Of a DNA stretch of 44,420 nt, positions 16,101 through 19,100 are shown piece after piece. Source of the DNA: Macrostomum lignano (lineage: Eukaryota); the NCBI GenBank assembly GCA_002269645.1, contig NIVC01004487.1:1-44420 (forward strand), read 5' to 3'. The notes below the pieces were generated by a model. That model did not search any database, was not told the DNA's origin, and was given only the letters and a program-made list of their open reading frames with translations. Position 1 is the stretch's first letter; every line of letters starts with the position of its first letter. The translations under genes were made by a program, and so were the position numbers.

Positions 16101-19100
16101 GCCGAAGGAAGCGGCATATATGGTTGAAGGCTCAAGGACCGGCAGGTGTTCTGGGCTGCTCAGGCTTACCCTAATATCTAAGCCCAGCATTTTCAGCAGG
16201 CACTCAATGCTAAACACCACGGTGAATGCGATATTCAGATTTCTCATTATATCGCTGTAGAATTGACTGGCACCGTGGAACTGAAAATTATTTTCATATT
16301 TAATCAATTTCAAAGCTGCTCGGGGACTTGACTGTTTGACTTGTTTATCTTGGTACTCTTGGTAAATATATTATTTTTATGTAAGCAGGTGGTGAAACCT
16401 TTATAAAGTAATAATGAGATCACATCTTTAATTGCTTAATACGAGCGTAACGGCATATAGAGCAATGAGCTGCTAAAATTGTTTGCAAGCATGTGGCATT
16501 TTTTGCAATAGACACTTTAATAGTGGCATATTAAGCAAATACAAGCAATATATACTTTATCTATAATGCCTGATAGATGCCATCATTTACTCGTAAAAAA
16601 TCTAATTGAGAGGCTGGTGGGTACGGAGTCAGGGGTGGAGAAAGTACGGGTGAATCAAAAGAAGGTGAGGTGGATGGAATAATCAATAGCGTAGGAGACG
16701 GGAGTGAGGTGGGTGTAGACGTCAAGGGTCGTGGGGGACGGGAGTGAGGTGGGTGTAGAAATCAAGTGTCGTGGGGACGGGAGTGAGGTGGGTGTAGACA
16801 TCAAGGGTCGTGGGGGACGGGAGTGAGGTGGGTGTAGAAATCAAGGGTCGTGGGGACGGGAGTGAGGTGGGTGTAGAAATCAAGGGTCGTGGGGACGGGA
16901 GTGAAGTGGGTGTAGACATCAAGGGTCGTGGGGGACGGGAGTGAGGTGGGTGGAGAAATCAAAGATCGTGGGAACGGGAGTGAGGTGGGTGGAGAAAAGA
17001 TTCAAATTCCAATTAAAGTAAAATTCAAGAAAGGCATTCTGGCTTTATACAATTTCACTTTCATGAAATAAAAATTGTGATTTTGCTTTAAGCAATAGTC
17101 AAGCCCTTACCTTCATCATCAGAATTAGAGTATTCAGCGCAATCATCACCATGATGAAGTATTCGAACGGTGTCGACACCACCAATCGCCAAATTCGATA
17201 CTTGATGGAGTTCTTGTTCTTGGGCATGTAGCGGCACAGCGGCCTCGCGTTGATGGCGAAGTCAATGCACTGGCGCTGTGTTGTGGAGTGCGAATTAATG
17301 GGACGTCAAATTGCTTCTGTGCGAGTCCAATGTGTACTTTTTCCGTATCACAGACCAATACTGCATATCTAGGCTTCCAATTAAAATATTCTTGGAATTT
17401 CTTCAATTTTGACTGGGTTTTCATAAGTCACACTGTTGAAAATTGCCATTTGGCTACTGGATTTCTGGCATCAGGGGCCAAATCGAGCACGTTGTCAATC
17501 ATTTCATGTTTTTTTTTGCTTTTTTCATGCTATTGAGATTAATGACTGACAAACTACGGGATACGGTAACTAGGGAATTTTGGCCCCTTGTCTTAACTCA
17601 AGCCTGGATCTCCGACAGAAATAATCCAGACTGTAAAAAAAAAACAGATCCCTGTTGAACGGCACTATCACGCTAGCTTCGACTGTCGAGCGGCACTCAC
17701 CTGGTTCTTGTCGATCTCCTGGTCCACCAGATCATTCTCGCCCTGCTCCTGGAACGTGATGATGATCAAGGCGACGAAGATGTTCACAAAGAAGAAGGGA
17801 AACACGATGAAAAAGATGACGTAGAAGATGGCCATCTCCTTGCGGTAGTCGGGCACCGGCCCCGTGTCAACGTGCGTGGCGGCCATGGAGTTCATCAGCA
17901 CACTGCAATCGCCAAGTTTTGTTAGGTTGCCCTGCTTTGTTGCGATTCCATGAAACAGAGTTGAGTTTACTGCGTAATAAGTTGCATAATATCAAGCGCA
18001 AAGCATAGGAACTTTAGGGCGATAGAAAAGCTGGTAAAAAAATTAATCAAAGAAATTATTCAAAAAATAAAAAAGTTATTCATACATACTTCAAACAGAG
18101 AGAGTGTGAGTGGGCAGGGAGTGAGGTTGGTGTTACACAAGAGAGTGTGAGTGGGCAGGGAGTGAGGTTGGTGTTACACAAGAGAGTGTGAGTGGGCAGG
18201 GAGTGAGGTTGGTGTTACACAAGAGAGTGTGAGTGGGCAGGAAAATAGTGGAAGTGAGCCTGTCGCTCTACTTGCGACTGAGGAATCTGAGATGCAATAC
18301 TGTCTGCAAGACGGCTATCAATATGAAGAACAGAAAATACACAACAGATCGTGCAAGACAACACTGGCCAAAGTACAAGCCTAGGGACTTTGCAGAAACT
18401 GGGTTGGACATTACGTTGGCCAGCCTTCGCCAGTGGACACGGTGAACAAGGTGAGCATGGAGTTGTAGATGTTGTCGTAGTGGAAGCTCTGGTTGCTCCA
18501 CTGCCGCTCGCGCATCTCGGGCTTTTCGGCGTCGCCGTCGTAGTGAAAATAAAATCCCCTTTGTTGTTCGAGGATTAGATAAATAAAAAACGTGTTAAAG
18601 CTGCGTTGAAGCTATGAGACAGCAAATTTAGAGTAAAAAATGTCCTTGACCAAAACTCTACCACCATTCACCGGATGCTAGGTTTAGCATGACTACACTT
18701 GTGCGTCCCAACAATGCGCTTCCCAATGAACCGGATTGAATGAGGAATGCAGCCACCAAGGGTTTCGGGGTAAAGGAAGGGAAGCTGGGCTGATCAACCT
18801 ACAAGTTCCAGCCCTCTCCCGTGGTGACAGTGAACAGCGTTATCAACGATATGAAAACGTCGTCATAGCGGAAGCACTGTGCCCGCCAGCTGCGCGCGTC
18901 GACGGAAACTGAAGTCTCGCCGTTTGGCGCCGTTTCATAATTGAAGAAGTAACCCCTGCATTTGTTGGGTCGGCGGCTCGGTTGGACGCGTGGACAGGAA
19001 TGCTCCCGGAACGGCTAATACTACTAATACTAGCAACTTCAGGAGGGCCGCGGGCACCCTGGCGCATCGGCTTCGGCGACATCATCGCGCAGCCAGCGCT

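Follow-up and report, generated by a model that had tools for sequence, protein, structure and literature searches.

Can a single Cav2 calcium channel gene encode two different pores? In most invertebrates, a single Cav2 gene serves all fast transmitter release. In the flatworm Macrostomum lignano, most of a four-repeat Cav alpha-1 gene lies on the minus strand of the 44,420-nucleotide (nt) stretch of DNA analyzed here (contig NIVC01004487.1, hereafter the window), and the exon encoding the turret, P1 helix and selectivity filter of its domain III is present twice, as two successive exons called A and B. A preliminary description of the window had drawn attention to this pair. The pair consists of genuine tandem copies of this exon, and we consider it fairly likely that A and B are alternative, mutually exclusive exons of a flatworm Cav2 which are both used, one gene thus probably making two pore variants. 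The gene structure, homology, open frames, splice signals, selective constraint and rarity among animals are shown below; from the sequence, we infer expression of A as well as B, an exclusive choice between them and a possible difference in function of the resulting channels.

Tandem Pore-Loop Exons in Domain III

The pair is flanked by two constitutive exons (all features of the channel gene are on the minus strand, and a slash marks exon borders). Upstream, an exon of 161 nt (19546-19386) encodes IIIS5 and the proximal turret (AVFNCVV...), contains two conserved Cys residues and ends at a CA/GTAAGT donor after 19386. It is separated by an intron of 430 nt (19385-18956), the acceptor region of which is C-rich and devoid of a U-run (…gccgccgacccaacaaatgcag/), from exon A (18955-18803; 153 nt, phase 2/2), which encodes the distal turret, the P1 helix and the filter TTGEGWN(F) and has the donor TT/GTAGGT. 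The A-B intron (18802-18559) is 244 nt long, lacks U12 motifs and contains many AG dinucleotides. Exon B follows (18558-18415; 144 nt, phase 2/2), with the filter STGEGWP(T), an N-Q-S sequon and the donor AC/GTAATG; as read from the sequence, its acceptor is preceded by a branch-site-like CTTTAAC (18600-18594) and then by a T-rich tract (~18592-18575). An intron of 512 nt (18414-17903), which holds 3.5 copies of a perfect 41-nt tandem repeat (18099-18241), leads to the constitutive exon for the P2 helix and IIIS6 (17902-17701), whose acceptor precedes base 17902.

Exons A and B are both bordered by AG and GT, start after two codon bases (CA/G) and leave a codon split after its second base at their 3' end. 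They are adjacent on the same strand, and no other coding sequence is found between 19386 and 17902. The coordinates, phases, 244-nt spacing and quoted sequences of the preliminary description were all reproduced, and its claim that both exons end in the domain III filter and retain its Glu was borne out, the turret being the part in which they diverge most. In a self-comparison of all open reading frames (ORFs) of the window by tblastn, A and B match each other with an E value of ~2e-11 and 40% identity, well above what chance would give. Each of them also matches the homologous exon in Schistosoma, Opisthorchis, Fasciola, Bugula and many unnamed animals, with E values of 1e-9 to 1e-18 and identical boundaries. 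In length, phase, borders and homology, the pair has the properties of a tandem cluster of mutually exclusive exons.

A Cav2-Type Channel Gene

The class of the channel has been assigned by several comparisons. With full-length Branchiostoma and Octopus Cav2 proteins as queries, tblastn placed the segments from IS4 (~42387) to IVS6, the EF-hand/GPHH region and the IQ motif (13006-12119) in colinear order on the minus strand, and more C-terminal pieces of the gene reach to ~3500, IS1-IS3 lying outside the window or at its edge. In homologues of the last large exon, the domains PF16905 and PF08763 are present, and the exon running from IVS4 to IQ matches proteins which bear the name 'calcium channel type A alpha-1' with 68-72% identity. 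When the two spliced isoforms were compared with PDB sequences by phmmer, human Cav2.2 (7mix_A, residues 1286-1403) was the top match of both, with 168.7 bits for the B-spliced and 152.6 bits for the A-spliced fragment. For both isoforms, Cav2.2 is followed by Cav2.3 and Cav2.1, then by Cav1, with Cav3, Nav and NALCN far lower (152-169 bits with B and 141-153 with A for Cav2.2, 2.3 and 2.1; 97-151 for Cav1.x; <63 for Cav3/Nav). The domain III filter motif is T-G-E-G-W in Cav2 and T-F-E-G-W in Cav1. Both TTGEGW in exon A and STGEGW in exon B fit the Cav2 motif, and their Glu aligns with E1365 of human Cav2.2 (hCav2.2). The gene is classified by these matches as a Cav2-type (N/P/Q-type, cacophony-like) alpha-1 gene.

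The closest database entry is an M. lignano protein, UniProt A0A1I8FJ67, which is set apart from the window chiefly by indels resembling frameshifts, some of its stretches being equal to the +1 or +2 frames of the window, and which joins exon A straight to exon B. As this entry holds both exons, the pair is not confined to the present assembly. Being an indel-ridden automatic model which is partly in alternative frames of the window, it is no evidence of a real mRNA, and its A-B joining is an annotation and assembly artefact typical for tandem alternative exons. Automatic models such as A0A1I8FJ67 concatenate exons of this kind, and clusters of them require manual curation.

Divergence of the Two Copies

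The codon alignment of A and B covers 47 residues, 20 of them identical, and 141 bases, of which 76 are shared, with identities of 0.60, 0.64 and 0.38 at the first, second and third codon positions. Identical bases are more frequent at positions 1 and 2 (58/94) than at position 3 (18/47; Fisher p = 0.012). The proportion of synonymous differences (pS) reaches 0.87, which is saturated, and that of nonsynonymous differences (pN) is 0.36; even in the block LTLFTV / GEGW, different synonymous codons are used in A and in B. Because synonymous sites are saturated, the duplication is old. Among 53 Cav pore-loop (P-loop) exons, 18 columns are conserved at a level of at least 80%, and 14 of these 18 are kept in A and 17 in B. 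The main argument for A as a working exon is that its frame, splice sites and conserved residues survive despite this saturation. Collectively, the codon comparison indicates that both exons are under long-term purifying selection. Over 54 homologous exons, the identity averages 50% for B, which resembles all other Cav2 channels, and 43% for A.

The segment swapped by the two exons corresponds approximately to G1324-P1368 of hCav2.2 plus the first two bases of the following codon. Within it, the turret of A has 21 residues, one Cys and a net charge of ~-1, and that of B 18 residues, no Cys and a net charge of ~-2, with 8 of its 18 residues charged, in agreement with the extra Cys and the more charged turret which had been described for A and B, respectively. 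The extra Cys of A (W-R-A-Q-C-F-R-Y) is located at the position of hCav2.2 D1345, where B has Ser; B has its N-Q-S sequon at the equivalent of hCav2.2 1343-1345 and A has none. The split codon at the 3' end of the exon encodes Phe in A (tt/t) and Thr in B (ac/t). At the filter position, Glu is present in both exons, and a change of filter residue of the NALCN type is not found. The differences are those of a turret swap of the Cav3 12a/12b type, in which length, charge and Cys number vary and the filter residue is kept. As both versions keep Glu, any effect must stem from the vestibule, the turret or the P1 helix.

In hCav2.2, D1345 lies on extracellular loop III (ECL-III), where it forms a hydrogen bond with Thr17 of ziconotide and is one of four non-conserved residues coordinating the toxin (PMC10761187). 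Entry of the toxin requires a joint movement of ECL-III and alpha2delta-1, ECL I-III being the alpha2delta interface (PMC10761187). Since the swapped segment includes the D1345 equivalent, a difference in block or toxin binding is anatomically sensible. It had been proposed that the isoforms may differ in permeation, block or toxin binding; the part concerning block and toxin binding is structurally reasonable given the swapped position, and docking of alpha2delta can be added to it, the proposal as a whole remaining a prediction.

Splice Sites and the Possible Basis of a Probable Exclusive Choice

The splice signals of the two exons were compared with those of the same Cav2 gene, using 17 acceptors. 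The pyrimidine fraction at positions -20 to -4 is 0.53 for exon B and 0.47 for exon A, with a gene mean of 0.56 (standard deviation, 0.11). The acceptor of B, which had been singled out as unusually pyrimidine-poor, is therefore ordinary for this gene, and the intron before the constitutive exon at 13004 likewise ends in ...gcaacaaag/. The acceptor of exon A has a C-rich tract with a T fraction of 0.06. Judged by these signals only, exon B resembles a default exon and exon A one which needs activation.

Several known ways of keeping tandem exons apart do not operate here. Because both lengths are multiples of three and all four products (A only, B only, A+B and neither exon) are open and in frame, nonsense-mediated decay (NMD) is unable to police the exon choice, as had been argued from the lengths of 153 and 144 nt. 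Steric exclusion by a short spacer is not found, as the A-B intron has 244 nt and many AGs, the nearest of which lies ~44 nt 5' of the B acceptor. Similarly, no U12 motif (/RTATCCTT, TCCTTRAY) was found at A or B, and the donors GTAGGT and GTAATG are of the ordinary U2 type. On these grounds, exclusivity through NMD, a short intron or U2/U12 incompatibility is excluded, which leaves trans-acting regulators or a so-far-undetected RNA structure as putative enforcers of the choice between A and B. A steric model with a distant branch point, as in alpha-tropomyosin, had been prompted by a pyrimidine-rich stretch after the A donor, and was dismissed as the spacer is full of AG dinucleotides. Elsewhere in the gene, ATATCCTT at 39564 is not a splice site; it is coding sequence, encoding F-D-N-I-L-Y of the domain I pore helix.

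Occurrence Across Animals

The duplication was not found in Opisthorchis viverrini, Fasciola gigantica or Bugula neritina, in each of which a single exon is located between the same flanking exons; Schistosoma margrebowiei is not counted, as its contig stops before the informative region. The corresponding exon was also searched in JGI/ENA metagenome contigs, which provided 57 loci. In all of the informative ones (37/37), defined by the presence of the upstream, P-loop and downstream exons, exactly one P-loop exon was present.

As the one exception, a tandem duplicate of the same domain III exon was found by exhaustive search in an animal metagenome contig of 1.5 kb (JGI metagenome 3300023220, contig Ga0255800_10245791), whose best named relative is Fasciola CAC1B, with 74% identity. 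Its copies (526-670 and 716-857) have the boundaries and phase of A and B, are separated by a spacer of 45 nt and encode GEYFDY…TVQSGEGWPA and GTFIVW…VVQSTEGWPG, respectively. With such a spacer, this pair is a candidate for mutually exclusive exons enforced sterically.

Probable Alternative Use of the Exons and Rival Explanations

In the mechanism which we propose, the exons for IIIS5 and for P2/IIIS6 would be connected by either A or B, which each contribute the P1 helix, the filter Glu with the next three residues and, of the domain III turret, the distal half. The three sister clusters of the gene and the duplicate of this very exon in the metagenome contig speak for such a use. B would be the default of ancestral type, owing to its canonical STGEGWP, its higher similarity to Cav2 and its better branch site and U-tract, and A would be an old, lineage-restricted variant. 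Exon A would keep the EEEE locus and alter the outer vestibule, with Cys in place of Ser/Asp at the D1345 position and Asn-Phe in place of Pro-Thr; it would further alter the face of the P1 helix and provide a turret which is longer, less charged and free of the N-Q-S sequon. The outcome would be two channel populations which share their gating machinery and would be distinguished by divalent block or permeation, by the access of peptide toxins and/or by the docking of alpha2delta on ECL-III.

A number of observations weigh against this proposal. The residue which follows the filter Trp is Asn in exon A, a position at which Pro is found in 46 of 53 homologues and Asn in none (0/53), and the extra Cys of A is odd and possibly unpaired. 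When exon A was compared by phmmer with 1.84 billion representative proteins, an A-like exon was found only in the M. lignano model, the other matches being ordinary Cav exons with 42-57% identity. No spliced Macrostomum product was present in the protein collections searched, exhaustively so with exon A, the only Macrostomum match being A0A1I8FJ67. An mRNA with both exons stays in frame, as does one with neither, and nothing in the sequence was found to forbid them. A search of the flanking introns for docking and selector duplexes, which had been suggested as a check, gave short complementary pairs without significance: the best inverted repeats in the introns of the pair are 10-21 nt long and 71-100% complementary, and include an 11-nt pairing of the A acceptor region (18972-18962) with the A-B intron (18714-18704) and a 12-nt pair forming a hairpin over the B donor. 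Neither the duplexes between introns nor the local hairpins surpass shuffled sequences: 1) the whole-intron duplex energies of the introns flanking A and B, calculated with RNAduplex in this one species, fall within the shuffle distribution and 2) folding against shuffles gave z = -1.4 for the hairpin over the B donor and z = -0.5 for the A donor region.

Several points would fit the view that exon A is a silent relic, a pseudo-exon which is spliced never or to a negligible extent, so that only the canonical B channel is made: its 3' splice region is the weaker one, a near-invariant Pro has been replaced by Asn and an odd Cys added, it has no counterpart in other species and no spliced product was found. 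A neutral copy which has reached a pS of 0.87 should, however, have lost its splice sites, its key residues and its frame, the chance of meeting no stop in 51 random codons being ~0.09. Exon A retains its AG/GT borders and phase together with 14 of the 18 conserved columns, its pN is 0.36, and it is intact in the independent A0A1I8FJ67 once assembly-type indels are set aside. We therefore regard a relic as unlikely. The same in-frame combinations which count against an exclusive choice, together with the lack of a detected steric, U12 or RNA-structure constraint and with the direct A-B link in A0A1I8FJ67, would suit two independent cassette exons, mRNAs with both or neither being regular products. 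Such mRNAs would nevertheless encode either two pore helices and two filters in one repeat or a repeat from which the pore loop has been deleted, and both proteins clash with the four-domain fold of every solved Cav structure. As for A0A1I8FJ67, it is ridden with indels, and predictors commonly string tandem alternative exons together. Independent inclusion thus appears quite improbable.

It has also to be considered whether the pair is an assembly artefact, in which the exon of a second Cav2 gene has been misplaced through a collapsed or mis-joined paralogue. The M. lignano genome is duplicated and hard to assemble, and flatworms have more than one Cav2 gene. Against this, a single exon only is duplicated, with clean and unique introns on either side; the copies are ~43% identical at the protein level, which is far from allelic or homeologous sequences; the same tandem order is found in the independent A0A1I8FJ67; and the gene contains three sister clusters with the same pattern. 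An artefact can hardly be credited. Alternative and mutually exclusive use of A and B remains the explanation which we favor.

If both exons are used, the gene offers a natural paired experiment, in which two vestibules differing at the contact with toxins and alpha2delta are combined with identical gating. M. lignano is a tractable, transgenic flatworm. How invertebrates diversify presynaptic calcium entry is at present approached through Drosophila cacophony, with its exons for a voltage sensor and a linker.

Sister Clusters and Surroundings of the Gene

Self-comparison of the gene revealed three further tandem clusters on the minus strand besides the domain III pair, with matched lengths and phases. 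Exons encoding IIS3-S4 are present in three copies (37054-36942, 36312-36200 and 35131-35019) of 113 nt each, the first of which has a GC donor (ag/GCAAGT); as 113 nt is not divisible by three, double inclusion in this cluster shifts the frame. Two copies encode the domain II filter and the start of IIS6: the upstream copy (33822-33699; 124 nt) reads TSEDWN...FGR and is atypical, the conserved S6 sequence being FGN, and the downstream copy (33021-32904; 118 nt) has the canonical TGEDWN...FGN. Here also, double inclusion is frame-shifting. The last cluster consists of two IVS1-S2 exons (16280-16170 and 14858 (or 14849)-14757), which are of phase 0/0, have lengths that are multiples of three and lie ~1.3 kb apart.

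Both domain II copies end in /GTATCCTT, the consensus of a U12-type 5' splice site (33698-33691 and 32903-32896), and a perfect match to the branch-site consensus TTCCTTAAC is located 5' of the IIS6 exon (32619-32611); its distance to the acceptor at 32563, ~48 nt, exceeds the usual one. Here, the IIS6 exon is probably preceded by a conserved minor intron, and the mismatch of a U12 donor with a U2 acceptor could be the basis of exclusivity in the domain II cluster. Voltage-gated sodium and calcium channel genes are known to be enriched in minor introns (PMC8767276, PMC6865273). The domain III pair is without the frame-shift or U12 safeguards of the IIS3-S4 and domain II clusters.

Taken together, the four clusters would permit a combinatorial Cav2 (3x2x2x2, up to 24 isoforms) in which channels with exon A form a presynaptic type with a physiology of its own, a tentative extension which we find possible and rather doubtful. 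Were it true, a high-voltage-activated calcium channel would have spliced alternatives for two of its four pore loops, which are undescribed in the literature searched, and the free Cys, the Asn-Phe and the missing sequon of A could alter divalent selectivity or block, redox sensitivity or the coupling to auxiliary subunits.

The introns of the Cav2 gene range from 81 nt to >8 kb, and their acceptors mostly lack U-rich tracts. The 81-nt intron (19627-19547) interrupts the IIIS4-S5 linker (…RVPKLK / AVFNCVV…). Repeats II and III are separated by a large GC-rich intron which contains, antisense to the channel gene, an ORF of 661 amino acids (26608-28593, plus strand) with an AP-endonuclease and a reverse transcriptase (Exo_endo_phos_2, 4.9e-19; RVT_1, 5.5e-22), corresponding to a LINE-like (long interspersed nuclear element) retrotransposon. 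Near-perfect minisatellites occupy introns and flanks at 18099-18241, 7529-8342, 13138-13594, 16690-16997, 24190-24370 and 5907-6163, these six arrays having units of 41, 57, 44, 39, 30 and 20 nt and identities of 89-100%. Tetranucleotide runs are found at 24745-25065, (GACA)80, and at 30172-30380, (AGAC)52.

Comparison With Known Systems

In a full-text literature search, no account was found of alternative exons for the pore loop of domain III (or II) in any Cav2 or Cav1 channel, nor was anything found on calcium channel splicing in Macrostomum. In Cav2 itself, the Drosophila gene cacophony has been shown to contain the mutually exclusive exons IS4A/B and I-IIA/B, which have distinct synaptic roles (PMC11828482). 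The M. lignano gene is similar in that an invertebrate Cav2 gene would be diversified by duplicated exons, and it also has alternative voltage-sensor exons (IIS3-S4 in three copies and IVS1-S2 in two). Unlike those of cacophony, which concern the voltage sensor and the linker binding Gbeta-gamma and beta subunits, A and B encode a pore loop, and the exons are not orthologous.

A pore-loop alternative is also present among the Cav2 isoforms predicted by RefSeq for the crinoid Antedon, in which the S5-turret-P1 segment of domain IV occurs as IFGDIKYSDTSSSINTHNNFHNFFMSLLLLF or MFGNVELNDETEINSHNNFQLFFTALLLLF with an unchanged filter. As in M. lignano, two homologous versions of a pore turret and pore helix are present; the swap differs by its location in domain IV and in another phylum, the domain III exon being invariant in 17 of 17 isoforms. 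These Antedon isoforms also vary by homologous IS3-S4 segments. The tandem copies of the metagenome contig described above concern the very same domain III exon, and over the 47 residues compared, copy 1 has YDDV and copy 2 YDNIY, as A and B do, respectively. They differ from A and B by their 45-nt spacer, by SGEGW versus STEGW around the filter Glu and by Pro after the Trp in both copies.

Outside the Cav2 family, the existence of alternative turret and pore exons in invertebrate Cav3 and NALCN, which the preliminary description had taken as established, is indeed well described by the Spafford laboratory (PMC4436565), and in both channels, such swaps retune selectivity. In NALCN, mutually exclusive filter exons are known in domain II (15a/15b, including in planarians) and in domain III (31a/31b, in myriapods and chelicerates) (PMC4436565; PMC3557258). 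Exons A and B resemble them as duplicated exons covering the filter residue of one repeat. The NALCN exons exchange Glu for Lys (EEEE versus EEKE or EKEE), whereas A and B both retain Glu.

In Cav3, the mutually exclusive exons 12a and 12b of Lymnaea and other protostomes encode the S5-P1 turret of domain II (PMC4436565), and two further sources deal with them (PMC9694082, PMC7382465). In both cases, tandem exons swap the turret and the descending pore helix, altering length, charge and Cys number and leaving the filter acid unchanged. Exons 12a and 12b end before the filter, whereas A and B run through the filter Glu to positions +3/+4; the Cav3 pair is pan-protostome and the distribution of A/B narrow; and the present pair, known here from the gene sequence alone, belongs to domain III instead of domain II and to Cav2, a high-voltage-activated channel of presynaptic type. 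Exons A and B would thus act like the turret swap of Cav3 12a/12b, in a different channel class and in a different repeat.

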